A DNA stretch of 64,000 nt from Ruditapes philippinarum (GCF_026571515.1 NW_026861243.1:310001-374000), one strand, 5' to 3'. Positions 19,840 through 61,138 are shown, counted from the stretch's first letter. Translations and numbers: made by a program. The notes: a model not told the origin generated them from the sequence alone.

Positions 19840-19988
19840 NNNNNNNNNNNNNNNNNNNNNNNNNNNNNNNNNNNNNNNNNNNNNNNNNNNNNNNNNNNNN
19901 NNNNNNNNNNNNNNNNNNNNNNNNNNNNNNNNNNNNNNNNNNNNNNNNNNNNNNNNNNNNNNNNNNNNNNNNNNNNNNNNNNNNNNNN
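19840..19988. other. Assembly gap (149 N)
   Basis: Run of N. Confidence 0.99.
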
Positions 19989-27300: not shown

Positions 27301-30300
27301 GCTCGTATTTTATTTTAAACTAAACCTCATTAAGCATACATACTTACAGAGAGCGTAAAAGCGTACAGGAATTATGCCGGAAGTATTGCTATGCCCAGTA
27401 GGTAGAGTAAGTTTTATATATCCAAATATATTAACGGAAATAAATATCTTAAATTGAGTTTTCATTTGTAAAAAATAATATGCATTATTTATGCCGGTGT
27501 CTCGTACTGCTCGCCATACATTTACAAATGTTACTATAATATTTATGCCTATAATCTGAAGATGGCAACAGTTATTATACATATCACAGTAGCAAACCGA
27601 TCAAATATTTTCAAATACATATGCAAATAAGGCCAATGAGAGGTCAAAATGTTTACCTACGGTCAAAATATTTGTTTAAAATAAGATCACCGTTTTATCA
27701 ATTTATCAATTTATCCGATACAAACTTTGGAGAGGATAAGCTATGTCACTGAATAGAAGAATTCACGCATTGCCATCATTGATTTCTTTTTGCTAGGGTC
27801 TGTGTTTAACAAATGGTGACTATGAAAGACCCGAACCGTTTGAAGCTTTTGCATTGCCATTAATTAGTTGCAAAAAAGACGTGCATTATTAAAGAAATTT
27901 AATGAATCGATGTATTAGTGCAGCTTCTTTGAAAAGTTGCGAATAATTAAATCAATCATTAAATCATAAACAACATCAACGGAAAAAGCAGAGACGCGAC
28001 TAGAACAAGAAATAACCATTAAATTTCTAATAAGGACATGCAACTCGTTCCACTACTGCAGTATATTCCGAATTTCAATGAAAACGAAAGAGGCTTGATT
28101 TATGAAAGAATTTGTACTCTTTCTATATATTTGAAAATCACCAATTAATTGCTATTTTATTATTGCGTCAATCAGTTATTTTACTTGAAATTACATGTAA
28201 AGAAGTGGAAGAGAAGTTCAAACTCTTATTATGAATAAGCCTGTTATTTTCTTCACAATTTTTCGTGCAATAGTTTTATATGTATTATATTTTGCAGTTT
28301 ATAAGATTTTATTGCATATTTTAAAAACCACAATAAATCTACAAAATCTTTCCAATTTTCCATTAACTAACAACAATTTGAAATATTTCTTACGCCAAAA
28401 TCCATTCAAATAGGCGGTACAAAAAGCTGTTTACGCATTGAGTCTGTTCAATTTACTCCTATGATAAATACTTCCTGGTCTTTTTGCAATAATTGTAATA
28501 TGACCTTGAAATAAAATTTCAAATTAGGTCTTGTCTGGGCATGTTGTAATTGTAAATTGCGCCAAGCGTCTTATAAAGTGAAATATTTGTTGGTTTTGTA
28601 ATTTGGGACGTTATTGGCAGTTGCTCTTCGCATCAGTCTTGAAAAGAAAGAAAGATAAAACAAGCATCAAAAGTTGTGTTTACGCTACATACAAGACACG
28701 TCATTTAGATATGTTCACAGAACAGTAGAATTGTTAAGAACATAGAACTGTGAACAGTATGTTCACAGAAATTTAATGTGATAGTTGATTGTTACGTTTG
28801 TTTATCTAATCGTATTTTACCCTTTGGAATTCATGTCTGTATTTGCTGCACCAATCGATACATAAATAGTGGTCACGTCAAATATTTCTGCAGTTTTCAT
28901 CCCAATTTAAAACTTTATTGTTAAAATTGTATAATACAGGATAAAGTGTTTTATGATTTAACCAATGTTAAACTAAATGACTGTAATAACCTTTGAAGAA
29001 CGGCACTTTGACTAAGTAAAAAATGCATGTAGGGTAATAGTAATAATAACAATTGAAACGTTAAACAGGTGGATGACCCATTTGTGACGGTTAGGTTTGG
29101 TACTATTGACCATTTCACCTTTATCGAATTTATTTAATTTCATGTTTATCAAATACTACATTGGAACATACTTTAAATAACAGTTTGACACTAGCAAGAA
29201 ATTCTCAAATGGTCAACACTTAATTCAACTGTAAACATGGTAAATTTGAAGCGTACGAGTTCTGAAAATCGATCGTTATATTGATATTTGTTTATTGAAA
29301 ATTACATAAAAGGATATAAACTATATAATCGATGACAAACAGACGCTACTGTGCGAAAAATGATCAGGATAAACGTTCACTCTCTAGTAGTTATATGTTT
29401 TTAATAATTGGTTCAATTAATTGGAAACGCAGTGATGTTATTGAAAATATTTGTGATGATTTCAACGCTAACAGCAAGTATGCCACTTATTATTTATGAA
29501 TAATCTATTAATACATAATCTATGATATTTTAAAATATTGCGTTCCGAAGAATTATTGATGATTTAAAAAACAACAACAAATATATCGCGTCAGCGTCAA
29601 ATAAGATTACACTTTATGTTTATGTTAAAAAGCCTAGTAACAAGTACGCATCTGTAAAGTATTTCATTGCCTTTGATCTTCTTTTAACTTGTTTATTGCC
29701 TTTTCCTGATCAGCGTTCATTGTAACGGCATGACTTAATTCCAGTTTAACATGCAAGATATTTTATTATGTTGATTTATGTCAGTCAGACAAACCTTATA
29801 CACTGGTATGTTAGAAGTTCATATTTTCTATGTAAGTTTCCAAATATATATTGATAAATCGTGGGCAAAAATCTTTTAAAAAACAATTTTAATTGCAAAT
29901 GATGTTTAAGTCAGAGACTTTTTATCCATATGCATTTGCTAAGACAGATCCATATCTGATTGGGATCTTGTCTAGAATAAATGATGAAAAGAGACGGCTT
30001 TGCAAATAAAATCGAAGTAGGATTTGCCAATATAATGTTTTGATATATTTACGAATTTGTTAATCAACAGATTAAAAGTTATAACTTTGAAATTGGATTA
30101 TGCACTAATGCACTATTATGACGTGAAAGGTCATTCTCCTAAATAAATGTTGTATTTTCTCCGACTAATCCGTTTAACACATATTATGATTGTTTAAGGC
30201 TCGTCTAGTATTTTAAAGTATATAAGTATTGTTTATTTTACTTTATAATCAGTCATGTTATGATAAATTTAGATACAGTATGCATTCAAACTATACGCAC

Positions 30301-34968: not shown

Positions 34969-35114
34969 TTTCTGTGGATGTTGTACATGGAATAAGTTCG
35001 AGCGCATGTTATGGTACTCATCCATGTGACTTCTTCTCCATGCAATGTCCGTCAAATCAGGTCATCAAATTGAACAATTTATATGCTGGATATAAAAATA
35101 CAACCATAAACCCG
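34969..35114 (+). CDS. Receptor paralog A, exon 2 (end of signal peptide + N-half of SUEL/RBL-like domain)
   Basis: Acceptor catttcag| and donor ccg|gtaagt; 146 nt, same length and phase as B exon 2. SSSACYGTHPCDFFSMQCPSNQVIKLNNLYAGYKNTTINP. Confidence 0.85.
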
Positions 35115-36149
35115 GTAAGTAAATACTAGATAGATTAGCAATAACGGTATTTAAGAATTTGAAAAAAAAAATTGATGATTATGAATTCTACACTTATCGT
35201 TTATACACTTTTAGATTTATTTAATTGATAGCCTTGCAGCCGTCTACTGTATACAAAATCTTTATCGCGATAACTTATGCCATTAGCAAGGTGTCTTTGA
35301 CATATGGATGTATGTGACATTATAGATTTTTCTAGTGAAGCTCATGAACAGATTCCCAAGATTTTAAATATTGCCTTGTTTCCATTGGCAAAACGTGATT
35401 TTCTTTCAGATAAATAATAAAAATATTTCAAAGTATAGATTACTCCCAGACCTTCGGTGCTACTTTGATTTCACAGTAACGCAACATCTTACGCCCCAAA
35501 GATTTGAGCAATGTTCAATCTTCAACAATAAATGGAATTAATGATCAAACAGAAACCAAAATTAAAGTAAAGATGTTATTGATGAAATATGGGAAAACTG
35601 CTTACAGCCTCCACACACAACTTGACCCCTGCTGTTGAGAGTTTAAAAATTATGGAAAGGGGAAATTCTGTTAATAACCAAATGTTAAAACCAAACATAC
35701 ACGCAAACTTAATTAAACAGAGAATGCACATTCTCCTTTTTATCCATCAATCACGAACGATTTCTATGGAGCAAGGGCGAATCAAATTGAATGGACGCTT
35801 TAATCTTCAGAGAAAGGATTCTCAGTAAAAGAACTTCTATAAAAATGAAAAATTCTTGCACATTATTTCACTACTTAAATCATAATTGGCAATATAAATT
35901 GATCTGGCTTACTTATAATTAAATAATCGTGCACGTTACAGAGATGATTGACTTAATAAACTGATTGATTGATTGCGTGATGTGCATCGTGCGTCATTTC
36001 AAACACAGCGTGATAATACGAGTAGAACTGAATTATTTTCTGCTTCTAAGTATGACACGCAGCCTCTCCCTTGCTTATGTATTGAAAGACTTGATAAGAA
36101 AAGAAATTAAAACTTAGACTGATTAGGTAGTTGAAAAAGCAACACAATT

Positions 36150-36420
36150 AGTGATAACGGTGATGATGATTACCATCGTGATGATAATGATTCTGATGAA
36201 GAGGATGATGATAAGTGTTATAATTATGGTAATGGTGACGATGGTGATGATGACAATGATGATGATGATGGTAAAGAAATGATGAATATCATGGTCATCA
36301 ATAATAATGATAATTGAAAATATCAAATACAAATACAATTATAATGATGATGATGATAATGATAATGATAATATTAAATAATGATGATGTTGAAGAAGAA
36401 AAAGAAGATGATGATGTTGG
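36150..36420. repeat. (GAT/AAT)-rich low-complexity trinucleotide tract (intron of A)
   Basis: Seen directly. Confidence 0.8.
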
Positions 36421-37503
36421 TTACGTTAAAAATAATATGAAACTGAACAGAAAAGCCTGATTTGTCTTATATTATCAAATACTAGTATTATCTTGAGTCA
36501 GCGTTTCTTTCAAGGCTGATCTACAAACACGATCGATGCATTGAAATAAATCAACAATAAAACTATTTATTACCTTTGTAACAACATAGCTGTTGTTAAT
36601 CTACTCATAAAACTAGAATAGTTTATTGTACGCGTTTGGAGAAACAACATAATATTAATTTACACACAGCTACCGTTTGAAAAAAATATCTACTGTATAG
36701 AATAGACTATCATAGTTATCTTAAATGAACAAAATTAGATACTATGATGGCATCTGCGAATGTTTTTTAACCGTACCAAAAGTGATCACCTGAACATTCA
36801 CAATAGGCTCTTTTGAATGTTGCTGAATTTTCATCCTAAATTATAATGGAAAGTTCCAAAAAAGGAAGCTGGGCAAGTTCATTTAAAAATCAGGAGCTGG
36901 AGGGTTATTTTCTATTATTTTAATGTTTTGTATTATTTTTTTAACGTTGTAACCTGCTTATGAGATTCTGCTTACAGGCGTGAACGGTGACTTGAATTAG
37001 TCGTACAGTCCATGATCAGGATCAATCAAACCTAGTTTTGCAACATTTGGAATTTTCGGTGGCGTTTGACCTTCCTTTTTTAAGTTTTTAACACAATTTA
37101 ATATGTCGTTATAATTTATAACTTTGGAAGAAATAAGAATTTCAATTTCAAAGACAGAATTTGAGAAAAGTAGAGGTGTGAAATAGAGGCATGTATTGCT
37201 TTTATCCTGATTACGTCACTAACTTCCGGTACATATTGTGCATGTATACATCATTGGTATCTAAGATACTTTAAAATATCTATTTTGCAGAAAATAAAAA
37301 AAAAACATATCATTTTGTACGTCATAACTATAACAGTGATATTTTTAAGGTCCAGCGAATATAATTACCAGTTATGATATCATTAAAACTAGATATTATA
37401 GTATCATTTCATCAATATGTTGAGTTGGATAATTACATAATGTCTAAATATTAATATGTACTTTGTCAATGCAGATAATTTATTTGATTTATTTTTGTTT
37501 CAG

Positions 37504-37744
37504 ATCTGTGGAAACGCTGATCGACATTGTGAACTTGAAGCAACATGTTGTTCGTATGCTTCAGGAGGAAATGACATTTTAGAACTTTTAACTTTAGAAA
37601 ATATTTACCATACGTATACAAACTGTTCTGGTCGACAGAGTTGTACAGACATTCAAGCTAACTGGCAACTGCTCGAAGCAACAGATAACAATGGGGATCT
37701 TATTTATTCATCTTTTGTTCAGCTAGAATACGACTGTGAGGACG
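37504..37744 (+). CDS. Receptor paralog A, exon 3 (C-half of SUEL/RBL-like domain)
   Basis: Acceptor tttcag| and donor g|gttggt; 241 nt. [36 protein letters not shown]; the CSGRxSC and VQLEYDC motifs resemble the SUEL-type lectin C-terminus. Confidence 0.87.
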
Positions 37745-37945
37745 GTTGGTTTGTTTATATATTTATATATTTGTTTATTTCTTTTTATCTTATTTAGTGT
37801 GCATAAAATGCAAAATCTGCGCAGAAGTCAAGGCTTTTTAAATATTTTCAAGAGTAGAAAAAACACCCCAAAGCAAGACTTCGTTTAAACGTCTGCGTTG
37901 TGTGTCGAGCAAACCACATATATGATATTTATACAAACTTCATAT

Positions 37946-38222
37946 TTTGTTTGTTTGATTGGATTTTAACATCACACCGACACGGTATATGTCATTTTGG
38001 CGACGTTCCAGCTTTACTGGTGGAGGAAGACCTCAGCTACTCTTCCTTGCATTATTTCAGGCATGAACGGGGACCTGAGTAGAACCACCGACGTTCCGAA
38101 AGCTAGCTGGATAGCTTCATCACATGTAAGAATCCAAAGTCCCTGTCGGGATTCGAACCCACAGCGGTGAGGGGCAAGTGGTTTGAAGTCAACAACCTGA
38201 ACCACTCGGCCGCGGACGCCCC
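37946..38222 (-). mobile_element. Full-length tRNA-derived SINE (V-SINE/RUDI-like, tentative) with 11-12-bp TSD
   Basis: Minus strand reads ggggcgtccgcggccgagtggtt..gggttcgaatcc (A/B boxes), gtcggtggttct..gtcttcctccacca and an (aaac)n tail. TSD aaacttcatat at 37935-37945 and 38223-38233. Confidence 0.88.
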
Positions 38223-38542
38223 AAACTTCATATATTTAGTCTTTAGTCTTAGTATTGTTGGCCTAGTCTTTTGTAATAATTTGTGCCAATGATGCTAGTC
38301 TGTGAGAATAAATAATTCACATAATAATGCTAGGACGTAATGAGATATTTTTGCAAACAATGTGCTTTCCTAAAATATACTCAGTAAGTTTGATTCCGTG
38401 TGATTTTCTAGTAGAAGAAAACAGTAATAATTTTCAAGTAAATTAATTTATATAATATAGAAGTAAAAATACGTTTTTTGGCTCTTCTTTATTTCTTTCA
38501 ATATAACAGCATGAGCACTATTCTATTACTTTTACTTTACAG

Positions 38543-38953
38543 CATCTTCTAAAATTCCTTTTTGTGGTGGCCCAACTGGTACAAACGGATTTACAGCTTT
38601 GTGAAATCAGTTTGACGGATTTTTGGGAAAAATTTTGACCAGAAAACCACAAAGACGTTTTTGAAAAGTAACTAATCGGGACAAAACAAAATTTTCATTT
38701 TTCAAAAAATAATGTTCGTTTGGGGAAAGTCAAAAAAGGGTTTTTAAAATCAAATGTTGCCAACTTTCGCAGCATTCTTCAGCTCGTTTTTTTTGCGGGG
38801 CCCAAATTTCAACCTACTGATCAATTGTACAGCTTTATAAAAAAAAAGAAACTTTTTGTTATCCAGCGGGAACGTGTGGGAAAATATCTTTAACTGGTCT
38901 ACACGAAAAAGGTGCACTAGATTCTCCAGCGATGGTTTGGATCTCGCTTAAAG
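38543..38953 (+). CDS. Receptor paralog A, exon 4 (CUB-like domain); frame disrupted, probably by sequence errors
   Basis: Intact splice sites and intact ends (ASSKIPFCGGPTGTN... ...LTGLHEKGALDSPAMVWISLK). The middle is colinear with B exon 4 but has many homopolymer-type indels; 411 nt vs 429 nt. Confidence 0.65.
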
Positions 38954-39292
38954 GTGAACGGTGTTTAAAATCTTTTAGTTATCTTTAGATTATGTCGAAA
39001 TTGTTTAAACTTAAGCACATACGTTTTTGAGCAAATATTGCTCTTTTTTGCTAAGCAATTCTATATACAGTAAAAGTACATAAATTTGGATTTTTGTTCT
39101 CTTCTCCTTAGCGTCAAGCTCCGCGGGACAAGTGGATTTTGTTGCTGTCCTCTTTTCTTAGCGACAATACGAAACAAAATGAATTCAATTTGTCACGAAT
39201 TTTAGCTAAAATGAAAACAAAAAAATGATATACGTAAATCAGCAATCATTTTTATTAAAAAAATCATACGTAACTGATTTACATTTAAACAG

Positions 39293-39907
39293 CTGATGTT
39301 AACAACGGTATTGAGGTTACTTGTAAGGAAACGGAACCTGCAGACTTAACAACGACCCCAACCACCACCACTACTACGACCACCACAGAACCGACAACGA
39401 CTACACCTACAACGACGACGACAAAAGCAACAACAACATTAAAACCAACCACAACAACACCAAAACCGACCACAACAACAACTCCACAACCGACCACAAC
39501 AACACCCAAACCGACCACAACAACGGCAAAACCGACCACAACAACTCCAAAACCGACCACAACAACTACAAAACTGACCACAACAACTACAAAACCGACC
39601 ACAACAACTCCTAAACCCACCACAACAACTCCAAAACCGACCACAACAACTACCACTCTTAAACCAACAACTACAACATCAAAACCAGCCACTACAACAA
39701 TACCACCACCACCACCAACAACAACACAAAAACCTACCACCACCACTATCACCCAAAAAACAACAACACCTACGTCAACAACTTTGTCAACAATCATAAC
39801 AACATTTATACCACCTAGGACTACAACTGTCTATATCCCACCAACAACGACTGACTATGAAGAAGAAACCACGATTCCTATACCAATTGAAGGCGGTGGT
39901 GACGGAG
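39293..39907 (+). CDS. Receptor paralog A, exon 5 (Thr/Pro mucin stalk with KPTTTTP repeats)
   Basis: Acceptor aaacag| and donor g|gtaac; 615 nt, open frame, phase 1-1. ADVNNGIEVTCKETEPADLTTTP...EGGGDG. Confidence 0.85.
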
Positions 39908-40281
39908 GTAACACTTCATTTATTAATTAAAAATAAGTTCTTTTTGTTTTGTAATCATTATGATAACACTTCAACCAAAGTCAAGGGAACTTTTGATATC
40001 CTATATCAAACCTCAATTTTTGCTTTTACTAAATTTTCATGAATTTTGCTTTTACGATTTTTGTTGGCAATAGGGCCCATTTTAACCAAGGATCTTAATT
40101 TAAGTAATGATATCAACTGATAAGTTTCTGACTGCTAAAATCAAATTTCTGTGTTTCTACTTAAAAGACGTCATCAGGTAAAAATGTTTACAGGAAATCA
40201 AAAGCCCATGTAGTCTTAAGGTGTTTATACGAACGTAGAGATCAATGGCTCCAGTCAATAAAAATTCAATTTATTTTACAG

Positions 40282-40387
40282 AGAAAGACAATGAACAACG
40301 TTTAGCTGTGTACCTGGCAATAATTGTCCCAATCATCGTGTGTCTATTACTGATAACGGCACTCTTACTGTGGATATACTGGAAGAG
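40282..40387 (+). CDS. Receptor paralog A, exon 6 (transmembrane)
   Basis: Acceptor ttttacag| and donor ag|gtaaat; 106 nt. EKDNEQRLAVYLAIIVPIIVCLLLITALLLWIYWKR. Confidence 0.85.
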
Positions 40388-40945
40388 GTAAATTACGCTG
40401 TATTGTTTTGTCAACTGAAATGTTGTACAGTTTTATTTATTATAAAAGTTCCATAGTTTTTAATGTAGTGGAATAAAATATACACTGTGTAAGACTTAAA
40501 AGGCAAATGATAAAAAACATGAATCATTTCTAATGAAATTATCTTTACTATAGCTTTAAAATTATAAAAGGCAACACCACCCATTACTTATTAAGTTTTA
40601 AATATTTTTCTGCATACATTATAATTCATTTGCAGAGCCAATTCTTATTATTGACTTTAAATTTTCCTTTGGTTGTTTTCTCTTTTTGGTCAAATTGACA
40701 CAATGTTGTAATTAAAATCATTACAATGGGTTACAAATTGGTATCACTGGAGATTCTTTATTGGGTTACTACGTACAAGAAAGTTCCAGATAATTTTGGC
40801 TGTCTGTTAAAGCAGCTACATGGGAATAATACCAAATGTGTAAACTTCTTTAAAATGATTTATATAATCAAAGATAATATTTCCTATAGAAAGTTATGGG
40901 AAAAGTAATCTGAACAACTTCTTTATTGTAATATAATCATTTTAG

Positions 40946-41678
40946 GACAACCCCCAGAAGGAGAAAATTCCATTTCATGAAAGATACCCCAAGATCCCAG
41001 GTTTACAACACCTTTAACAACACAAAGATTCTCGACGATTTTATAAAAGTTAATGGAGGAAATCCAAGCACACCAATTAGCCTCGAAAAATCCCCAATAT
41101 CATACTTTATTTCTGTTCCTGAGCCGCAAAAACGACCTAAGTCTATTTTGTCAAATGGTTCAACATATAGACACCAACATCCTCCCTCTGAACCTTATGT
41201 TATACCAATTAATGTAACTAAAACTGATTCAATGTATACTTCACCGAGAAAGGAACCTGTGCAAAACATAGAATATGTTCGAGTTAATCAAGAAAATAAC
41301 GTGATAGACGATACTGTAATTATTACTGACACGATTGAACCAGAATCTAAAACAAAACCCGTTGTTAAAAATGAGCCTGCACAACGAAAAAGTGTGTTGA
41401 AAAAGAAACCTGATGCCTCAGACGGCAGCGTTCTTATTCATATTGACAATCTAAGCCTTCCACCATTGTCCTCGAGGACATCAGATATTAATAGTTCGAT
41501 CGATACAGCATCAAATCGCAGTGTTATCGGTTCCACCCCTGGTAACCTGACACCAGAGAGACGGGATAGCGGAGCTGCAATTATTTCTACGGAGCCTATT
41601 GTTGATAGACATTCAGCAAACGCATATGTCCTACCAGGTAGCTCACCAGAAGACAGTTCTGTACTCTTTGTGCCCTGA
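40946..41678 (+). CDS. Receptor paralog A, exon 7 (~243-aa cytoplasmic tail, stop at 41678)
   Basis: Phase-2 acceptor ttttag|g joins in frame to the 233-aa ORF. Basic juxtamembrane RTTPRRRK; Ser/Pro-rich tail with several Tyr motifs. Confidence 0.82.
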
Positions 41679-44600
41679 TAAACAATTATAAAATATATAA
41701 TGTTAAGGCACGACATAATAGGTCTTTTATCGGTCCATCTGGATAACAAGTTTATGAATTTGTATTATATCAATGATATTATTGATACTGTTGATAAAAC
41801 CGATTTCAGGCATTGCGGAATTATTTAGCTCATCGGCCAGTGCGCTGGATTTGTCCAAAATGAACAAAATCATTAGTCGATGAAATATGTAATAATTATC
41901 TTTGCTATTATTCAGAAATGAACATTTATACAAGAATACAATATAATTAAATTATGTTTTAACCAAAAGCATTGAATTTGCTTTTCTTATAAGCAGAGAA
42001 TACATGAAACAAATAAGATTAAATTAACAATTAAATTTTCAGTACTCCGTCAACAAAGAAAATTTTGCTGATGGATCGCTTATGTATGTAATTTGTTGTT
42101 TTTGTTTATATATTTGCTGTTTGTTTGCCATTATCAAAAGGACATTTACAAATCATAATGTATTATCTGGTGAAATTAAAATATGTTTATATTTTTATAA
42201 AATAAATATAATTGATATTACTTGTTCTTTTTTGCAATGATGTTTGAACAATTTCACCAAAATAAAAGGTTCAATGCTCCTACAAACTAAACACAATTTT
42301 TATTGAGCTTCAATTAAGTACACAGATAAATGATACTGAACCGTACAATGAAAATCAGTAAGTGAGTGACTGCATTGGTGGGTTTTGGGTGGATAAAAAC
42401 ATCAGTTTATAATATTGCATTTGCTCACATACCATGTTTCAGAAACGATCTCTCATATTGTTCAAGTTACGTAAAGAATGGAGCAACTGACTTTAAGATA
42501 ACTAAAATATTTCCTTATAGATTAGTTCGGAATGAAGCAGAATGGGACTTAATTATTTGTATAAGCACTTGTACCGTACCTTAATTACCAATTCAAGGCT
42601 GGCCATACATCCCTATTCCTGTTTGTAAAAACAGTTATAACCTATGCAAATTCGTTGACAACACGTTCCATAAAATGTGCATTAAGCATTGTTCTTTTTG
42701 CAGTAGAAAAATATAGTATATAGTTCTATTGTCAGCGCTCTCACCGCTGGAAGATTTTTTTTAATTCGCAAGAATTTCCCGATTATCTGTTGTTTTTTTG
42801 CAGCAAGAAAAAGTACTTAAAACATTGATAATTTTCTTAGAAATTCAAAATAAAGTTTTCGAAGTTAAAGTTCTATTGTCCTGTTAAATGAGAACCATTA
42901 ATGTCTTTCAGAAAATCTCGTTTATTAACCCGGTGTGATTGAGTCATACGTATAGGAGTAAGTGAAAGCAATGTTCTTATTTAAGCAATGGAACAATAGA
43001 ATACATTGCATGTTATGTATTTCAATAAATGCCATCGAACGAAATGCTATATTCACAATAAGGATCACATTCAAACATCACCCCATATATCGATACATAA
43101 CAATCAATTGATTGATTGATTGATCTTTGTCTGGGCTGTGTGGAACAAAATTATCCAAAATGGGCTCATATATTGTCCAAACATTTTCTTTTTGTAAATC
43201 AATTCATCAAAATACGTAATAACACAAAGATGAAAATATTATATCGACTAAATCAAAGATTGAAAGAAAAAAATGAAATAAATGAAAAATGTGTTACAAC
43301 AAAACAAAAAATATAAGAATGTTGAAAGAAGCAGTTGGACAAACAGTTGATAAGGATCATAGCACAAATACGGCCTTTATTATCTTATATTGCAGATAAG
43401 TATTCGAAATTAGAAATTTTACTTACCGAAGTTTGACAAAAGATGTAATATGAACGAAGTTTATTTTACAAAATATGAACCGCGATATCTTGTCAGTTTT
43501 TAAGACGCATGAATCATTATTGTAGAATAAGGTTTCATATAGGAACATTGATTTTCTGAAGAACTGAAGAAGCAGTTTATTCTTTAAAATGAAATCAGTA
43601 TTTTTATTTATTTTCCAGTGGTCGGATGGTTTTACTCATTAGACACCTGTTTTCCGGAGAATTATTTTTTTCACAAAGTATAAAGCTTTTTTACCTTTTG
43701 GTTTACACTTTTTGGGGTTGGGCAAAAAAAAATTTTTTTTTCCCGAAAGTAAACTTTATAAAAAAAATGCTTAAAGAAAAAAGTTCTCGTGGGAAAAATT
43801 TTATCATTTAAAGTCGCAAGCTCAGAAATAGACAATATAAGGATAAACAAATATAAGATACTCAAATTTGAGTTTTGAAAATATTGATAATTGCTACACA
43901 GTCTCTTTGTATGTTAAAAATAAACATGTTTCAACTTCATTTAAGGTAGATGTGTTATGTTTTAAACCCTACACACTATAGGTGATCACAATATGAATAT
44001 ATAGTGTCATTGAAAAAAACTGGCAGTTTTTTTTTTAAAAAAGACCAGCTTTACTTGACCCATAAAAGGGAATGCAGCTCTGCATACTTAGTTTATTCAT
44101 TTTTTTATATTCAGTAAGAATTTTATGGATTTCAATACATTTCTAAGATAAAAATATTTTACCGGAAGATGAGCATAGTATATCTTTGAGTTCCATTTAC
44201 GGGTTGTGGCTTAATTTTACTTCAAACGAGAACAATTAGAATCACATTGAAAATCATAAAGTTGAAAGTGTAATATTCGATATAAGTGTAAATATAACAT
44301 CATAAGATATTTTTACTATCCTAACATTATTTACAATTAACAATGATTATCAATACAGCTTACATTTAATGTTAGCAAAACAAAATAAAAACATTGTTCA
44401 CTTCTTTTTGATATAAAGTTGATCATTTACTTGTATGTAGAAAGCGTTAAAGATTGACAGCTATCTATTCGTTTAAATTTTTTTGTAAAGTATATTTTTT
44501 CAATAATTTTGGGGAATAAAATACAAATTTGATAAATTTAAAATTTTTAGTTTACTAAGTTTTCTTATTACCCGGGCCCCCTTTGGGGTTTTTTCAAACT

Positions 44601-44903
44601 TTTATAAACAAAAAAATTCCAGGAAAATTATATTACCCTCCTTTTAAGGGTTATGCAAAAATTTTCAAAATTTTTAACCGATTTTTTGAAGTAAACCAAA
44701 TTTTTTTTTGTACAATAACAGAAACGTAAGGTCCCCTCCCTACTCGTTTAAAAATATTATAGTTCAAAGGGCACCTGGTCGTGGTCCCGGGGTTTAGCTG
44801 TTGCTGTAATACACCAAGGTATTTTTCCAACAGTACCCTCATTTCAATATAAAACATATGGATTTGGTCTTAGTTTGAATAACGGAATGAGAATTCAATT
44901 GAT

Positions 44904-44922
44904 TTACGTAGAAGCACATTTT
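44904..44922 (-). CDS. Receptor paralog B, putative last exon (RKCAST*)
   Basis: Strong polypyrimidine acceptor ttttttgcgttctcttcag|; phase 2 gives R-K-C-A-S-T-stop. An alternative acceptor near 45302 also gives a short tail (RDRKI*). Confidence 0.5.
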
Positions 44923-45505
44923 CTGAAGAGAACGCAAAAAAGAAATAAAGTAAATAAAAACATGATAATGTATTCTTTAGAATAAAAGTTTAACAAAACA
45001 GTTTTTAATGTTGTTCGTGAAATAAAGATGATACTGTAAAAGGCTGTAAAAAAGAAGTAGTTAATGGTAACAATGGTCATATTTAGTCAAATTATGCTTA
45101 TTTATAAAAATATGTTTGAAAATGGCACTTAAAAATCTTAAAAATAGAACTGTTTTCGACACTTAATGCTTATCAGATGTATAACTTTTAGTTCATAATC
45201 AATTAATATTAAAAATCCTTAAAAAGCAATTTTGGCAAAACTGAAGTTTCCCTTCACAATCTTAACATAAAAGATAAAGAACCTTTTAGATTTTCCTGTC
45301 TCTGAATATTACGATATTTTGGTATTTATAATCGTTTCTAATGTAAACCTTCTAAAGTACAATGCTTTTCATTCTGCTTTTGCTGTTCTGGGTTTACTAA
45401 GGCATTAAACCTATTATGCAACTAAAGAATACGATACTGTTTTTGACTGTGGATATTTTAGCGTACCGCATTTGCAAAGGCTATTGGATGATATTATACC
45501 ATTAC

Positions 45506-45611
45506 CTTCTCCAGTTTAACCAAAGACAGAAAGACGTGATGGCAACAAGACATAATATTAGCGGTAAATTAATTGCTAATATCAGGGTAACATATGTTGT
45601 TTTTTCATCAT
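45506..45611 (-). CDS. Receptor paralog B, exon 6 (transmembrane)
   Basis: Acceptor ttacag| and donor ag|gtaatg; 106 nt, as in A. DDEKTTYVTLILAINLPLILCLVAITSFCLWLNWRR. Not in the ORF track. Confidence 0.83.
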
Positions 45612-46399
45612 CTGTAATACAAAATTAGTTATTGCATAAATATGGTAAATATGTAAGTATTTATAAAAAAATTACATAAAACTGTGTACCTCAATATATT
45701 GTGGTAACGATGAACAGACACATTTGTCATGTTTCTAAAGAAATCATGAAATAATAATAAATGATAATAGTGTATTGACATCTTCTGAGACATTTTTATA
45801 TATGCAGTATATGCAATTCTTTTGTGGGAACGATTTTTAATTTCAATGTTATTTTTTGTTTTGTTTTGTGTAACATATGTCATTGTATTTTCTGATACTT
45901 CAGTTACAGTGTAGGGCATCAACAATATCAACAATCATCGAATGTTTGGAGAAGATCCATTTCGATAGATAAAGAAATACCAGCAAAATTTTTCATAAGA
46001 AGTTACATAATAGATATTTTCATATCATAATTAATCTAAAAGCAACTAACTTAAAGGTCTCTTTACTATGTATCAAAACTTTAACTTTACACGCAACACT
46101 ATGTCTCTTGAGACCAAAACTCTTAAGTATCACAATTTAAACCGATATAAATTACACAATGCTTAAGGATGTTTGCTTTTAAATTAGTAATACTTACAAA
46201 ATAACATTTACATATTCACACATATTCTGTATCGGTTATCATAAATTAAAGTGTTTTTCATAAACCAACTTGTTTCTATGAGTAACTAAACTAACTTGGT
46301 TTTGATTTTCAAAGCTATATATACAGAAAAAACACTATATTTAGTCCACCATCGGGACTGGACCAAAGTGGTTTTCAATGCGAGGTTGTGGATATTCTT

Positions 46400-46613
46400 A
46401 TCAATGATCTACAATTTATTTTCTCATTTTATTTCATACAGCAACCCAATAATAACTGTTTTGACACCTTGCTTATCCCTGGGACGTTGAGACAAGTGAC
46501 CATTAGACGCAAAGTTCAAAATGAATTGTCACGGAGAAATTGCGTCACTTTCGAGGATCGAACATGCGACCCCGGATTTCTAACCGTTGCTCTCCCTAAT
46601 GAGTAAAGCGGGA
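46400..46613 (-). mobile_element. Degenerate tRNA-derived SINE
   Basis: Minus-strand head tcccgctttactcattagggagagc..gtcgcatgttcgatcc resembles A/B boxes. Confidence 0.45.
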
Positions 46614-46834
46614 TGACGAAAGAAAATTAATATGTAATCGAGTATAATTATTTAATAAGTAATATGTTTCAAAAGTAAAAAAATGTCTCTAATCATTTGC
46701 TAGCATAATATAAGCAAATGATATATACATTTTGATTTTTAGTAATATGTGAAAATTTTGTTTAAAAAAGAATGACCATCATAATGGTAATGAAACAAAA
46801 CAAAATAAAATATATGGTATTGATGTATAGTTAC

Positions 46835-47266
46835 CTCCATCAAGACCTCCTTCACTTGGTATGCGATTTGTAGTGGTCGTTTTGGATAATGTTGTTGTTC
46901 TTTTTGTTGATGTTGACGGTAAAAGTGGTGACAGTTTTAGTGTTGTTTTCGTTGGTTTTTGTGTTTTTTCTGTTGTAAGTTTGGTGGTTGTGGTTTGTTT
47001 TAGTGTTGTCGTCGTTGTTGGTGGTTGTAATGAAGATGTAGTTGAAGAAGGGGTTGTTGTGATTGGCATTTGTGTTCTTGTTGCTGGTGTTGTTGAGGTT
47101 TGATTTGTCATCGTTGTTGTATGTGAGGTCGTTTTTGGTTCTGTTGTAGTAGTTGTTGTTGTTGTTGTGGTGGTGGTGGTGGAAGTAGTGGTGGTGGTTG
47201 GCGTTGTTGTTAAGTCCGCAGATTCCATTTCCTTACAAGTCACCTGGATACCGTTGTTAACATCAG
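46835..47266 (-). CDS. Receptor paralog B, exon 5 (mucin stalk)
   Basis: Acceptor tacatag| and donor g|gtaact; 432 nt, phase 1-1. ADVNNGIQVTCKEMESADLTTTP...SEGGLDG. Confidence 0.87.
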
Positions 47267-47823
47267 CTATGTAAATGTAGAATTTTGTTACGTTTGATTG
47301 ATTATTCTAACATGACCCGCATTTTTCCCTATTGAACATAGAAGGACTGAAAGTGTGTGTTATTATGCAATAAAATCACTGTTGAAGTTCTATATTAAAT
47401 TAGACCACTAAAAAAGCGACGCGCTGGAAATTAGTACGGAAACAAATCAGGCGCAATTTAGTTTAATATCAGGTACGGCAGTATTTATCTGTTGCTGTGG
47501 TAAAATCGAAATCATATATCCAAATCGGTGATTTTGTCGCTTGATAAAATCACTGTTTGTCGTCCGGATGCGTATCATTATATTACTCGGGCTACGCCCT
47601 CGTAATATAATTCCCTGCACAGTGATTGAGCAATAAAATGACAAAATTGATAAAATAATCGTTAGCATTATAAAAACATCATCTTTATATATTGTTAACT
47701 TTTTTCATAAAAAATATCCAAAGTTAATAAAGATCCGTTTTGTGAATTAAGGTTTGCAATCTCCTTTATACTTTATCATCAAAAATTACTTTATTATCGA
47801 AAATGCGGAAATTCAAATTAAAC

Positions 47824-47966
47824 NNNNNNNNNNNNNNNNNNNNNNNNNNNNNNNNNNNNNNNNNNNNNNNNNNNNNNNNNNNNNNNNNNNNNNNNNNNNN
47901 NNNNNNNNNNNNNNNNNNNNNNNNNNNNNNNNNNNNNNNNNNNNNNNNNNNNNNNNNNNNNNNNNN
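47824..47966. other. Assembly gap (143 N), within intron 4 of B
   Basis: Run of N. Confidence 0.99.
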
Positions 47967-48076
47967 CACCACTCAAGGATTCAAGCAAAAAGCAATATTT
48001 GCTCAATACTTATGTGTAAATATCAACAATTCAGACTTAATCTAAAAATAATTAAAAGATTTTAAACATCGTTCAC

Positions 48077-48505
48077 CTTTCAGCGAGATCCAGACCATCG
48101 CTGGAGAATCTAGTGCACCTTTTTCATGTAGACCGGTTAATGATATTTCCGAAACTGTTCCAGCTGGCATAACAATGGTTTCTTGTTTATCATTATAAAA
48201 GGTGTATCTATAGTGTTGATCAGTAGGTTGACATTGGGCAGCAAGAACATACGACCTGAAGAACGCTGACGAACAGTTGGCAACACTTTGATTTAAACCT
48301 TTCTGATGACTTTCCAATCGAACATCTATTGTTTTGAATATCACATTTTGTTGTGATCCACGATTCGTTACTGTGCATAAACAGTCTTTGCTGGCTTTTG
48401 CTGGGTCAAATTTCTCCAAAGATCCGTCAAACATGATTTCAGCATAGCTGTAAATACCGGTGTTCGTACCAGTTGGGCCACCGCAAAAAGGAATTTTTGA
48501 TGATG
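48077..48505 (-). CDS. Receptor paralog B, exon 4 (CUB-like beta domain)
   Basis: Acceptor ttaacag| and donor g|gtgaac; 429 nt, open frame. ASSKIPFCGG..DCLCTV..FKTIDVRLE..CSSA..MVWISLK. The CUB assignment is tentative. Confidence 0.85.
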
Positions 48506-48635
48506 CTGTTAAACAATAACATTTTTAGAGTGTAGTTTATCCTATGATTTGCTAGGTCAATCAAACCAGATATGTTTTGAAAGATTTTTCTAGAATATCT
48601 GGATTAAGATTAATGAAAGGGAGGGGTTGGAATAG

Positions 48636-49134
48636 TACGGTGTTCCGTTTGGACAATCTTGATTTTCCATTTCGTTCCTACGCGCGATGCACGATGGAAC
48701 GATAGTAAAAACGCGATGGCACGATGACACGATAATGAAAACACGATGGTACGATGGTGAAATCGCGATGGTACGATGGTGAAAACGCGATTGTATATCG
48801 TGTTTTCAACATCGTACCATGGCGCTGTCACCATCGTACCATCGCGCTATCGTGTTTTCACCATCGCGCTTTCACCATCGTGTTTTCACCATTGTACCAT
48901 CACGCTTTCACCATCGTGCAATCGCGTTTTCACCATCGTACCATCGCGTTTTCACCATCGTACCATCGCGCTTTCACCACCGTGCCATCGCGTTTTCACC
49001 ATCGTACCATCGCGCTTTCACCATCGTTCCATCGCGTTTTCATCATTGTACCATCGCGTTTTCACCATCGTGCCACCGTGCATCGCGGGTACAGACTAAA
49101 TAAATAATCACGATTGACAAAATGGAACACCGTA
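48636..49134. mobile_element. MITE with TACGG..CCGTA termini, 6-bp TSD and internal inverted ccatcg arrays (IS3EU-like)
   Basis: TIR tacggtgttcc(g/a)ttt; TSD gaatag at 48630-48635 and 49135-49140. Internal ~20-bp units caccatcgtaccatcgcgttt. Confidence 0.85.
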
Positions 49135-49222
49135 GAATAGTGACTAAAAAACTGGGATAAAGAAGCTGATAGCAGTAGACAAAAATGGTAGAGTGCATTA
49201 CTTTCTTTGTTATCCTAGTTTA

Positions 49223-51130
49223 CACGGTGCATATCCATATCGGTACCCTCTTTGCAAAATCTACTCAAACGGTACCCTCTTTGCCAAGCACAGGTCATTC
49301 TTTGCTTAAAACAAACCAACGATGAATAACAATCCAGTAAAATTTCATTGTAATAAGGAAAGGAGGTATGACACGTGGAAAAGATGTATACCATATATAT
49401 ATGTGGGCTTAAATGAACCAGTGGCTTGATTATATATGCATCATACATGTTTCATATGTTCATTTGTATATCATCTTCGGACAAATGGCAGTCAAAAATA
49501 AATGTAAAATTGATAAAAACACCATACTTTCGGTTTCTACCTCTTTGCTATTGAATTTTTATATCACAGGTACCCTCTCATTTTTAACACACGGGTACCC
49601 TCAAAGCACGACGCTATTATTTGTGTTAATCGTTAGTATGCAATATTTCTTACTTTTATGTACGTATATATTCTATAGTGTAATGATACGGAGTTCTGTT
49701 TTTCACAAATGTGAAGAAATAAGAGAAGATAGAAGAGCACAATTGTAAACTTATGATGCTTAAAATTAGATCTGGTCAGTGGTAGGAATCGCCTGTCTTA
49801 AATAAGAACTGCCTATTCAAGCATTAATGAAATTGTACTGCATGTAAAGGTCAAGGTAAACGAGTCAGATTAAACTGATATATCATTTATTGTCTAGCAG
49901 ATTTTTGGGTGAGTGGAAGAAGATCTGATATGCCCCTCTTTCAGTATTTCAGAAAAATCATAGACAATTGCTAGGTTGTTGTGTAGCTTACTAACATAAA
50001 ATAATTTGATTCATTCAGGATTCGAACCAATATGAGTTTCTAACAATCAAAATGCAACAATATAAAATTTATAACACTAATAACTATATCGCACAACAGG
50101 TAATGCTGTTATCGTATCATCGAATCGACATCGTTGTTAAACTATGCAAGCTTTTCCCTAGGTTATGGCATTGTAATACTGTGCTTTTACCAAGACAGGA
50201 CAATACCACGATGACCCACTTGAAGCACCGTAGTTATAGGAAATATTTTATACTTTTCAGATATACGTGAGAATGTCATTTATATATTATAGAACGGTGA
50301 TTTTGGTGTCCTGTTCTACATGTAGTTTCAAAAAATATACTCACTGGCATTTTACCTAATCAATATTTTGCTTCAGTCAGTCAGTATAATAATAGTAATT
50401 TAGTATTTTGTATGGAAGTAAAATCATTACATTATTACATATTGCTCCAATTATGACAAATAACTTCACATTTAGCATTATTTCCCTCACCTCGGACATA
50501 AGAAAAAAAAGAAAAGATTCGTACTGTGCTGCTTTTTAAATTTCATCAATTTAGGCTTTCGCTCATGATAAATTTTATTGAATGTATTTGCACTTGTTTA
50601 TTTTAATTTGTTTGTTTATTTATTTATTTATTCATTCATTGAATAAATGTTAAGCCGAATAATTGCGTATAATTACCTATATTAAAAAGTCTTATTCCAT
50701 TGCGCTTTTATGTACTGTGCTATGACGGGTACCCATTGAATAACAGGCTACATGTGATAATAAAAAATCAATAGCAAAAAGGTGGCCCGTTTCGCTGCAA
50801 AACCGAAAGCAGGATGATTTTATAAATTTTACATTTATTTTTGACTAATAACTGCTATTTTCCCGAAGATTATGTATAAATGACATGTCGATTTTATTTA
50901 GCTTATTATAGGGTTGCAATAATTGAAAATGGACACACTAAAATAAGCACTCAAAGAAAGTGTTACTTGGTATACATATTTTCCACATGACATAACTTCT
51001 TTCGTCAGTTGAAGAACATTAGCTGGATTGTTATTCATCGCTGTTTCTTTTATCAAAAATAGCCTGTGCATGTGCAAAAGGGTACCGAGTATATTTTGCA
51101 AAGAGGGTACCGGTTTTGAGATGCACCGTG
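49223..51130. mobile_element. Non-autonomous CAC-terminal DNA transposon with 5-bp TSD (Transib/RAG-like; Chapaev/CMC not excluded)
   Basis: TIR cacggtgcat..cggtaccctctttgcaaaat at both ends (~70 bp, imperfect). TSD gttta at 49218-49222 and 51131-51135. Confidence 0.75.
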
Positions 51131-51166
51131 GTTTATGTCTATTTCTTTTTTATCATGTTTAAGAAC

Positions 51167-51266
51167 CACACACACACACGCACGCACGCAAGCATGCACA
51201 CACACACGGACGGACGCACGCACGCACGCACACACACACACACACACACACACGCACGCAAACACG

Positions 51267-51301
<35 letters not shown>
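51167..51301. repeat. (CA)n/(CACG)n compound microsatellite
   Basis: Seen directly. Confidence 0.92.
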
Positions 51302-51340
51302 CGAGAGCAGTTTAATGTTAAAGTCAATGAATAAACCAAC

Positions 51341-51581
51341 CTTCCTCACAGTCGTATTCAAGCTGAACAAAAGATGAATAAATAAGATCACCATTGTTAT
51401 CTGTTGCTTGGAGCAGTTGCCAATTAGCTTGGATGTCTGTACATCTCTGTCGACCAGAACAGTTTGTATACGTATTGTAATTATTTTCTAAAGTTAAAAA
51501 TTCTAAAATATCATTTCCTCCTGAAGCATAAGAACAACATGTTGCTTTAAGTTCACAATGTCGATCAGCGTTTCCACAGAT
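51341..51581 (-). CDS. Receptor paralog B, exon 3
   Basis: Acceptor tttcag| and donor g|gttggt; 241 nt; 73/80 aa identical to A exon 3. Confidence 0.88.
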
Positions 51582-51826
51582 CTGAAACAAAATTTCCATG
51601 AAAAATAATATGAATCTGGAGGCATGCTGCTAAAGGTTATGATATAAATTTATTCATATACGCGCACGCACATTTTATTCATGAATGATGTACCACCTTA
51701 CAATTTCGTTTTAATGAAATGTTTCAGTACTAAAATATGAAGTTAAGGCGAAAGATACTATGTCCGACTTGTATGTGAAATTTACTTAAGATATCTGAAA
51801 AGAAATGCAAATATATAATTACATAC

Positions 51827-51972
51827 CGGATTAATTGTAGTATTTTTATATCCAGCGTACAAATTATTCAATTTGATGACCTGATTTGACGGACATTGCA
51901 TAGAGAAAAAGTCACATGGCTGGGTTCCATAACATGCGCTCGAACTTTCTCCATAAACTGCTTGCATGACCA
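51827..51972 (-). CDS. Receptor paralog B, exon 2
   Basis: Acceptor tttcag| and donor ccg|gtatgt; 146 nt. VVMQAVYG-ESSSACYGTQPC...NTTINP. Confidence 0.88.
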
Positions 51973-52227
51973 CTGAAATAGTAGGTTTGCATTTTCAGCA
52001 TATATTGAGGTGTTATGATTAAAAGCGTACACGTCGGTCTTACTTATTTATGATTTGGAAAAAATGTACACATCATGAAAAATTCTTTCACAATTACACG
52101 AACAGCTTCAAAGGTCAATTATTCACAATAAAGAATAAAAATCTTCTTATATATAAAAAAGAATTATGTAACATAAACTTATTAAATAAGTAATGTTCAT
52201 ATTTTAAAATAAAACATGGAATCTTAC

Positions 52228-52270
52228 CTTCAAATAAAGAAGCAAGAACCAAAATGATCGACGAATCCAT
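52228..52270 (-). CDS. Receptor paralog B, exon 1 (signal peptide)
   Basis: aagATGg start; MDSSIILVLASLFE, then donor g|gtaaga, phase 1. Joins exon 2 to give a plausible signal peptide. Full model is 471 aa. Confidence 0.75.
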
Positions 52271-59532: not shown

Positions 59533-59674
59533 CTCAAAGTACCATTGTTTTTTTCAAAATGGTTAAGCTTAATGGTGTAAAATTAATTAGTGAAATCTAC
59601 GTTGAATACACTACTGATTCTGCTGGACTCATAATAGCGCCTAGTCCAATATAAATTGACCTTGATATGATCTC

Positions 59675-60061
59675 CATATATTTAGTCTTTAGTGTTAGTA
59701 TTGCTGGCCTATTCTTTCAAAATAATTTTTGCAATGATGCTTGTTCTAAATTATAAATAATTCACATAATAATTCTAGGAAGTTATGAAATATTTTTACA
59801 AACAAGGTGCTTTCCTAAAATAGACTCAGTCAGTTAGCTTCCGTGTGATTTTCTAGCAGAAGAAAACAGGTACATTTTCAAGTATATTTATATTATATAT
59901 CAAAATATTACAGATTTTGGCTCTTTTTTATTTCTTTCAATATAACAACATAAGTAATTTTCTAAAACTTTTACTTTACAGCATCTTCTAAAATTTATTT
60001 TTGTGGAGGTCCAACTTGTACGAACACCGGTATTTACAGCTATGCTGAAATCATGTTTGAC
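59675..60061 (+). pseudogene. Third, truncated fragment of the receptor family (A-type intron 3 + first ~27 codons of exon 4)
   Basis: Aligns by eye with 38229-38615. Acceptor at 59981, then ASSKIYFCGGPTCTNTGIYSYAEIMFD; homology stops abruptly. Confidence 0.8.
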
Positions 60062-61138
60062 AGAATTAATAGTTTATCTTACATGCGGAATATATTTGAA
60101 CCCGTGCACAGGTTGAGAACGCATAGTAAACTCGCTTGATGGCTCGTCAAATATAGTGTCTCCAGTTTTAAAATGTCTTTCTGTTCTCATATCGTATAGT
60201 TTAATAATGAATACATTAGCTTGTAATTATTGCGTTGGTTTACATCGGAAAATACTATAACAACAATATGATAACATTTTTATACGAATTTGTTTTAGTT
60301 TGCTTGTGTTGGAATCTACATACTTAAACCAGACAACAGCTTGCACATGACAGGTTTTGAACCCACGCATCCAGCAATCCTAACTAGGCCCAAACGTTAA
60401 CAACTCGGCTTCATCGCCACTGTAGGTCACCAGGATGATAATTGCAGTATCGTTGAATGTCGTCAGGACTAGAAAAATGGGAAGAAATCATACCGACTTT
60501 AAATTATTCAACGACAGAATTGTCTTTCGGTTGTTTTTGTTAAACAGTGGTCAACGTATCCACGACTCCATCAATCTTTTTGCATTTATGTGACTTCTAT
60601 CAATAATCATAAAGCGTTTTACACCTAAGAAGACAAGATATATCTTTCATATCATTTTTGAGAATAATTTTGGTTGGTTATGTAATAGAAAGAACATCTC
60701 TGATGTGTACGAGGGGCGTAGCCTTGGAGATTCAATCAATTTGACGAGTATTTTGATTGTATAAAAGGCAAAAATAAATATTGTCACCATCGTCTCAGAA
60801 AAAAGTTAATATACAAGCATCATTATATGACTTTTCTATCGTTATCCTTTTCTTTTTCGTCACATTAAAGCCGCAGAAAACAGGAAATCAACGGGCAATC
60901 CCTACAGGCAGTGCGGTAACTGGAGTGCGTACAATTGATACCTGTTATCCAGTTAACGCATTGTGCATGTTTGGGTATACGATTTAACTCTGATATATTT
61001 TCAATAGAAAGGTCTCCAAACTATGATGCAAATAGTAAAATACAAAATTCGATAATTTCTCTAGTATATTAACACTGTAAAGGACACAGGTAATACCAAA
61101 CACACATGTTTGAACTTATAAATAAACGATTGAAATGC

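Follow-up and report, generated by a model that had tools for sequence, protein, structure and literature searches.

Paired receptors are encoded by linked genes whose near-identical binding domains are homogenised by gene conversion; the tail of one partner is long and bears an immunoreceptor tyrosine-based inhibitory motif (ITIM), and the other partner combines a short tail with a positively charged transmembrane residue that recruits DAP12-type adaptors (PMC13358205). Paired receptors with conversion-homogenised heads are regarded as a vertebrate immune invention based on immunoglobulin (Ig) and C-type lectin domains (PMC13358205). Here we describe two genes, A and B, of the Manila clam Ruditapes philippinarum that can be compared with these pairs. 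They lie in a stretch of 64,000 nucleotides (nt) (GCF_026571515.1 NW_026861243.1:310001-374000, hereafter the window), which belongs to a genome assembly of 1.4 Gb and consists of AT-rich eukaryotic DNA. In the family to which A and B belong, the heads group by species, while the transmembrane segments and tails group by type. The sequence comparisons support the view that the family evolves like paired receptors; they do not support opposing signalling by the two partners.

The clam genes resemble vertebrate paired receptors in several ways. They are closely linked paralogs that are much alike on the ligand side in exons 1-2 and differ in their transmembrane and cytoplasmic parts, and one partner has a long, Tyr-rich tail while the other probably has a short one. 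The pattern of heads by species and tails by type is the signature that is attributed to ongoing gene conversion (PMC13358205). Furthermore, one of the two partners is degenerating, which is common in Siglec pairs. However, the clam head is predicted to be SUEL-like and CUB-like rather than of the Ig or C-type lectin kind, and the ITIM position of the A-type tail varies within the family. The short partner has no charged transmembrane residue and no known adaptor with an immunoreceptor tyrosine-based activation motif, and the B-type tail is a shortened version of the A-type tail, not an opposite module. It is also important to note that the clam lineage is an invertebrate one, in which an immune role and opposing signalling would be putative.

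Two linked paralogs and their relatives

Gene A (+ strand; exon 1 at 34969) and gene B (- strand; ATG at 52270) are closely linked and arranged tail to tail, in convergent orientation, with ~3.2-3.8 kb between their last coding exons (Table 1). When 33-44.5 kb was compared with 44.5-54 kb by BLASTN, four collinear inverted matches were obtained, with nothing between them, namely exon 1 (88.5% nucleotide identity), exon 2 (94.4%), exon 3 (80%), and the stalk exon (70%). The transmembrane exons were matched by a sensitive protein search (tblastn; 37.8% over 37 amino acids (aa), expect value (E) 4e-6). Exon lengths and phases agree between the two genes (146, 241, 429, and 106 nt, exon 3 being 411 nt in A), and the stalk exon is longer in A (615 nt) than in B (432 nt). 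Similarity drops to background 15-70 nt beyond each exon edge. Since the introns are unalignable and unequal in length (intron 1 of A spans 2.4 kb, against 0.25 kb for that of B), A and B are true paralogs and not mis-assembled haplotypes. A preliminary description of the window had recognised two convergent paralogs with common exon lengths and phases and had thought mis-assembly unlikely, all of which is borne out. Its further statement that the N-terminal domains are near identical applies to exons 1-2 and fails for exon 3, where the A copy has ~10 indels and four stops.

Both genes are predicted to encode mucin-like type I membrane glycoproteins, consisting of a signal peptide, the head, a Thr/Pro-rich stalk, a single transmembrane helix, and a cytoplasmic tail. 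A likely exon 0 of A, missed in the first reading, is located 5.5 kb upstream and was found in a scan for ATG...GT in phase 1. It has the length of exon 0 of B (43 nt), and its core is closely like Mercenaria signal peptides (MVFKLLVILTTMMT). An assembly gap is located within intron 3 of B (48076 to 47267); it lies 110 nt downstream of the donor of exon 3 and 558 nt upstream of the acceptor of the stalk exon. Because both flanking B exons are complete, and because the residues encoded by exon 3 and the stalk abut directly in the Mercenaria orthologs with none missing, no coding sequence is expected in this gap.

Searching with exon 3 of B yielded 24 relatives among 1.84 billion representatives, all of them bivalve or unlabelled, and five relatives were found with the A tail. 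The named relatives all come from heterodont bivalves (Ruditapes, Mercenaria, Mya, and Dreissena) and are either "uncharacterized" or mis-named mucins, which agrees with the earlier remark that no description of this family was known. The members are P0042 (791 aa), P0015/P0037 (496/499 aa), P0040, P0041, and P0014 in Mercenaria mercenaria; P0020 (600 aa), P0044 (584 aa), and P0018 (415 aa) in Mya arenaria; and P0021, P0043, P0045, and P0026 in Dreissena polymorpha. Exon 3 of B is 60% identical to its Mercenaria orthologs. In the 1.4-Gb R. philippinarum genome, the only member found besides A and B was a relic third copy, and a metagenome scan for independent exon 3 copies confirmed no locus. 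Judging from these searches, the family is undescribed and confined to heterodont bivalves, and A and B are the only pair in the Manila clam.

Two further observations concern the range of the family. On contig C4264 (75080-75430, +), an intronless open frame of 215 aa shows 31-33% identity to the SUEL-like head (E 0.003-0.007) and may represent a distant soluble relative. The signal-peptide exon of B (52228-52270; MDSSIILVLASL) is closer to those of the Mya B-type members P0044/P0018 (MDSTLSLVVLSIL) than to Mercenaria B or any A type; these very short sequences hint that the B type predates the Venerida-Myida split.

Concerted evolution of the heads

A-type and B-type heads are 88-95% identical within species and 40-64% identical between species (identity matrices). 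In trees built from exon 2 and from exon 3, sequences cluster with others of their own species, the two R. philippinarum sequences being joined with a support of 97/97 and those of Mya with 100/99. A-type or B-type clades are rejected by approximately unbiased (AU) tests, both for exon 2 (p 1e-131 to 1e-47) and for exon 3 (p 0.045 and 1e-56). In the tree of the transmembrane exon, on the other hand, B of R. philippinarum is placed with the Mercenaria B genes (88/95), a clade of A and B of R. philippinarum is rejected (p-AU 0.014), and a Mercenaria species clade is marginally rejected (p 0.046). The B type also has a distinct transmembrane sequence, VTL.LAI.LP...N.RR, in Ruditapes and Mercenaria.

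Heads that group by species, together with transmembrane segments and tails that group by type, are on these trees a case of concerted evolution, and paired-receptor-like evolution is thereby supported. In R. philippinarum, the shared part of the head comprises exons 1-2, which are 88-94% alike at the nucleotide level and form species-wise clusters, whereas exon 3 of A is broken. The earlier notion of neighbouring paralogs that share an ectodomain and differ in their tails is upheld with respect to general architecture and evolutionary mode.

As the two types predate the Ruditapes-Mercenaria split and yet have heads that are alike within species, gene conversion between the linked paralogs, in short tracts limited to the exons, is the likely homogenising mechanism. 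The synonymous divergence (dS) of exon 2 between A and B is 0.13, and the flanking introns are at random identity. It is plausible that conversion was confined to the exons, because only the exons are similar enough to pair.

Predicted fold of the head

The head was modelled with AlphaFold, using a natural head-only fragment (P0014) and the family alignment; searches were run with single exons, and analyses of whole proteins relied on database orthologs. The mean predicted local distance difference test score of the model is 78, with residues 140-282 at 84-96 and the SUEL-like domain at moderate confidence. Residues 21-141 match the lectin domains of latrophilin, sea-urchin SUL-I, and fish CSL3 with a Foldseek probability of 1.0 and VIA-align Z scores of 7.2-7.8 (87-92 residues aligned). 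The Foldseek matches to SUEL structures (5h4s, 2zx0, 2jx9, and 6vhh), at a target TM-score of 0.6, indicate the same fold. Residues 148-282 match more than 20 CUB structures (Z 6.5-8.2, root-mean-square deviation 2.4-3.2, 94-104 residues), the best by Z being Kremen (8.2), neuropilin (7.7), C1s (7.6), and TSG-6 (7.6). The model therefore suggests a head composed of a SUEL/rhamnose-lectin-like fold (exons 1-2) followed by a CUB-like fold (exon 3).

At the sequence level, the resemblance is fainter. In a profile search of PDB sequences, four latrophilin lectin domains ranked first, with E ~0.3, and the Cys framework, the CxGxxSC motif, and the C-terminal (Y/F)xxxEYxC could be aligned. Hence, the family shares with SUEL/rhamnose-binding lectins (latrophilin, SUL-I, CSL3; Gal_Lectin) the predicted fold, this framework, and both motifs. 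It differs from them in the sugar-site motifs: YGR is altered to an aligned AG(Y/G/R)K (e.g., AGYKN and AGRKD), and DPC is absent from the family head alignment. Pfam searches of each exon and of six full-length relatives gave no match at E up to 1, including Gal_Lectin and CUB. Given a fold match with neither a Pfam hit nor the DPC motif, the term "lectin-like", as used for the head in the preliminary description, is tenable for the fold and does not extend to sugar binding.

Type I receptors with CUB domains, such as Kremen and neuropilin, offer another comparison. Like the predicted clam receptors, they are single-pass, combine a CUB-like sandwich with another binding module, and have endocytic-type Tyr motifs in the tail; unlike them, the clam family has no sequence-level CUB match and is restricted to heterodont bivalves. 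SUEL domains are also known from other membrane proteins, i.e., EVA-1/EVA1C. The SUEL-CUB-mucin domain order is found in none of Kremen, neuropilin, and EVA-1/EVA1C.

Decay and persistence of gene A

Aligned with its counterpart in B, exon 3 of A shows ~10 small indels and ~20% substitutions; the homologous frame contains three TGA and one TAA, and no frame is open. Part of this damage can be polarised with the relic of the third copy, which is 82% identical to 38226-38622 over ~400 nt and then breaks off into unrelated sequence. Since the relic consists of an A-type intron joined to the start of an undamaged exon 3, the first three deletions in exon 3 of A are derived (three-way alignment). 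Exons 1-2 of A are still open, and their ratio of nonsynonymous to synonymous divergence (dN/dS) against B is 0.21. A has been annotated in RefSeq as "uncharacterized protein LOC132715001" of R. philippinarum (XP_060553946.1, P0008; 491 aa). This model is identical to A from MVWISLK onward and takes its start Met from the last intact stretch of exon 3, near the 3' end, and it has neither a signal peptide nor a head. For B, the searches recovered no RefSeq model. According to our gene models, which correct the annotation of these two Manila clam genes, LOC132715001 is a decapitated version of A.

Small transcriptome-like runs (X1, X2, and X3), whose reads and contigs were aligned over 39700-45699, provide evidence of transcription. 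In run X3, in which A is represented at a depth of ~159, one 607-nt contig shows A spliced from the stalk through the transmembrane exon to the tail at GT..AG sites. In X1 and X2, the 3' untranslated region of A (41700-42200) is covered at depths of 57-190 by contigs only ~95-96% alike, and the A coding exons carry no contig at the 95% threshold, probably because the alleles diverge.

It has to be asked whether A is a transcribed, decaying pseudogene and B the single working gene. If so, the likeness to paired receptors would be incidental, and exons 1-2 of A would be open only through overwriting by B. The ruined exon 3 and the headless RefSeq model agree with this, as do the 94% identity and low dS of exon 2, which are what recent conversion predicts; in addition, an identity of 70-95% to B at the 3' end of exon 3 and over ~60 nt of the next intron looks like the trace of a partial conversion tract. 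However, the reading frame is open and the splice sites are intact in the 733-nt tail, the transmembrane exon, the 615-nt stalk, and exons 0-2. The tail has no repair partner in B, yet it shares 64% identity with its A-type counterpart in Mercenaria (P0042) and has kept all the motifs. Spliced A transcripts are also well represented in run X3. Finally, A could still yield a SUEL-only receptor through skipping of exon 3, because this exon is symmetrical (phase 1-1) and an exon-3-skipping isoform is annotated in Mercenaria (P0041). Taken together, we regard the loss of all function in A as somewhat unlikely, although it is the most serious alternative.

Tails, transmembrane segments and the question of signalling

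The tail of A has 249 aa, eight Tyr residues, and one IEYVRV, which confirms the long Tyr-rich tail described at first. Homologs of the tail exon (733 nt) in other samples are 42-97% identical. Tails of the A type, of ~230-250 aa, are held by A of R. philippinarum, Mercenaria P0042, Mya P0020, Dreissena P0021/P0043, and Logan-derived sequences. They share VYxxF near the membrane, (N/D)PLY, PYVIP, [Y/H]V[R/K]V, DGSVLIHVDNLSLPP, GSTPxxLTPE, and a conserved C-terminus. A look-up of the A-type tail in the Atlas returned sub-threshold matches only, to other disordered tails (scores 0.75-0.76). Membrane-proximal YxxF/I and (N/D)PLY are motifs of the endocytosis or adaptor-docking type, and their conservation here may point to endocytosis or adaptor docking rather than to signalling like that of paired receptors.

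The end of B is more difficult to establish. The transmembrane exons of A and B both end in AG followed by GTAA, and read-through gives an immediate stop in both, so the sequence alone is uninformative on tail length, including the short B tail suggested in the preliminary description. Contigs of X1 and X2 show B spliced from the stalk to the transmembrane exon. A and B are thus seen as distinct spliced transcripts. Beyond the transmembrane exon, one X1 contig (record 7) has a joint from 45506 to 44875, in which 21 nt are matched before a divergent allele of the same stretch follows. The resulting tail of 8-13 aa reads RR-TKTKSI-stop in the sampled animal and RR-TKTKSICFILK-stop in the assembly. 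The joint is provisional because its acceptor reads CA in the assembly, not AG. A short B tail is likely, if thinly documented; the RNA check of the gene models thus succeeded for A from stalk to tail and for B from stalk to membrane, with the last exon of B resting on that contig.

Among the relatives, the B-type tail of Mercenaria, 94 aa long, can be aligned to the initial third of an A-type tail, of which it retains the first three Tyr motifs, and Dreissena has further models with tails of 11 and 23 aa. When Mercenaria and Mya tails were used as queries downstream of the B transmembrane exon (E up to 200), only noise was obtained, and no sequence like their B-type tails was found elsewhere in the R. 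philippinarum genome.

In the preliminary description, the tails were regarded as opposite, A possibly being an ITIM-bearing inhibitory glycan sensor and B an activating (adaptor-coupled) or decoy counterpart, similar to Siglec-5/14. Linked genes with a shared head that evolves in concert, a long and a short tail, an exact ITIM consensus (IEYVRV) in A, and VSYIRL at the aligned place in Dreissena would all fit such a pair. However, across ten aligned relatives the ITIM position is Tyr in six and His in three (Mercenaria A, which is the nearest ortholog, P0005, and P0006), the tenth being poorly aligned, and by our own estimate one consensus match among eight Tyr residues is near chance. The Asn reported in the transmembrane segment of B is indeed present (AINLP), but it is Gly in Mercenaria and hence not conserved, and no charged residue (Lys, Arg, Asp, or Glu) occurs in the transmembrane segment of any B-type protein or any other family member. 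Nor are the tails opposite, as the Mercenaria B-type tail bears the same proximal Tyr motifs as the A type. Moreover, the head of A is broken in exon 3, and a sugar-binding role has neither a Pfam Gal_Lectin match nor a DPC motif in its favour. An inhibitory A opposed by an activating B is therefore not supported, and we consider it very improbable.

The idea that A and B are an assembly artefact, i.e., collapsed or inverted haplotypes of one gene, could appeal to the inverted orientation, the high identity of two exons, and the gap within B, but is already refuted for practical purposes by the unalignable introns with their different lengths (intron 1), transmembrane exons ~38% identical at the protein level, tails unrelated in length, a separate ortholog type for each copy in Mercenaria, and distinct spliced transcripts.

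An account of the locus

We consider it probable, though by no means assured, that A and B represent a two-type bivalve receptor family with concerted heads, and that the pair has undergone complementary decay in R. philippinarum. The ancestral protein would have begun with a signal peptide. Exons 1-2 would have encoded a SUEL-like domain and exon 3 a CUB-like beta-sandwich, followed by a Thr/Pro mucin stalk, a single transmembrane helix, and a disordered cytoplasmic tail. An old duplication, before the Ruditapes-Mercenaria split, would have given rise to the A type, with a motif-rich tail of ~250 aa, and the B type, with a transmembrane sequence of its own and a truncated tail (94 aa in Mercenaria); the head exons of the linked copies would then have been repeatedly converted. 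In R. philippinarum, A would have lost the CUB exon and kept exons 0-2, the stalk, the transmembrane exon, and the tail, and its product may be either a receptor with a SUEL-only head, produced by skipping of exon 3, or a headless protein, as the RefSeq model implies. B, in contrast, would have kept the complete head and lost the B-type tail, ending 8-13 residues past the membrane.

The family is likely to function in recognition at the cell surface. The A-type tail may couple ligand binding to endocytosis or to tyrosine-based signalling, and B, which lacks such a tail, may present the same binding surface without signalling, perhaps as a decoy or as a form retained at the cell surface.

Several points weigh against this account. 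The fold matches have middling Z scores (7-8), one of the two domains was modelled with moderate confidence, and Pfam finds neither. The short tail of B is known from a single contig in a single run, and the acceptor of that joint is non-canonical in the assembly. Read evidence for A is confined to the stalk, transmembrane exon, and tail, and would agree with either skipping or inclusion of exon 3; inclusion is favoured by the RefSeq model and would reduce A to a transcribed pseudogene. Gene conversion has been deduced from tree incongruence and low dS, with no conversion tract seen in the introns. Finally, the tree of the transmembrane exon is based on 40 columns and has moderate support, and inspection of the sequences preceded the naming of its groups.

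Features of the window

The coordinates of the exons and of related features are summarized in Table 1.

Table 1. Exons of genes A and B and associated features, in window coordinates
Feature	Position	Strand	Length (nt)	Description and evidence
Gene A candidate exon 0	29435..29477	+	43	Phase 1, donor GTATGC; start codon and signal-peptide core MLLKIFVMISTLTA; ATG...GT phase-1 scan
Gene A exon 1	34969..35114	+	146	End of signal peptide and start of SUEL-like domain; AG/GT boundaries
Gene A exon 2	37504..37744	+	241	Remainder of SUEL-like domain
Gene A exon 3, degenerate	38543..38953	+	411	Exon of the CUB-like domain; frameshifts and stop codons
Gene A mucin-like stalk exon	39293..39907	+	615	Thr/Pro-rich repeats; donor confirmed by RNA contig (X3 record 17)
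Gene A transmembrane exon	40282..40387	+	106	GT..AG splices on both sides; RNA contig (X3 record 17)
Gene A tail exon, coding part	40946..41678	+	733	Stop 41676-41678; acceptor confirmed by RNA contig; 3' untranslated region to ~42200
Gene B exon 0	52228..52270	-	43	ATG, MDSSIILVLASLFE; read from sequence
Gene B exon 1	51827..51972	-	146	
Gene B exon 2	51341..51581	-	241	
Gene B exon 3	48077..48505	-	429	Intact CUB-like domain; open frame, no stops
Assembly gap (N) in B intron 3	47824..47966			Both flanking exons complete
Gene B mucin-like stalk exon	46835..47266	-	432	Junction of stalk and transmembrane exon in RNA contigs (X2 records 15/16, X1 record 7)
Gene B transmembrane exon	45506..45611	-	106	...YVTLILAINLPLILCLVAITSFCLWLNWRR; RNA contigs in runs X1, X2, X3
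Gene B terminal exon, provisional coding part	44839..44875	-		Short tail TKTKSI... then stop; one RNA contig
Relic of third copy	59672..60067	+		End of A-type intron 2 and first ~45 nt of undamaged exon 3

The rest of the region contains several repeats. Intron 2 of B carries a 22/44-nt minisatellite (~9 copies) and a (CA)n-rich microsatellite of ~135 nt, at 48683-49075 and 51167-51301. Between A and B, a dispersed high-copy repeat occupies 43864-44187, with a contig depth of up to ~3000 in all three transcriptome-like runs. Most raw reads of this repeat continue into unlike sequence, and "opposite strands" joints occur at 43877/44170; an internal inverted repeat was looked for in the element (43.9-44.2 kb), and none was found. 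At 53155-53391 (-), a 78-aa open reading frame contains LLHDNAPAH and may be a fragment of a mariner/Tc1-type transposase. A second assembly gap, of 149 N, is located at 19840-19988, outside the A/B region.

Implications for bivalve receptors

A wider, more tentative proposal can be built on these results. A true paired-receptor system may have arisen in heterodont bivalves separately from that of vertebrates, on a scaffold that is neither Ig nor C-type lectin but combines SUEL-like and CUB-like domains with a mucin stalk. Conversion would keep the heads of a signalling or endocytic long-tail partner and a truncated-tail partner identical, an arms race involving a ligand or a pathogen would be the driver, and single partners would be lost recurrently, as in Ruditapes. 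We regard this as possible and worth stating, but would not yet count it as the expected outcome.

The point of interest is the family-wide incongruence between heads and tails. A pattern of heads by species and tails by type in four genera, on a different scaffold, would make convergent evolution of the paired-receptor strategy testable. For bivalve immunology, the family would provide a new candidate class of surface receptors, with relevance to disease in aquaculture.

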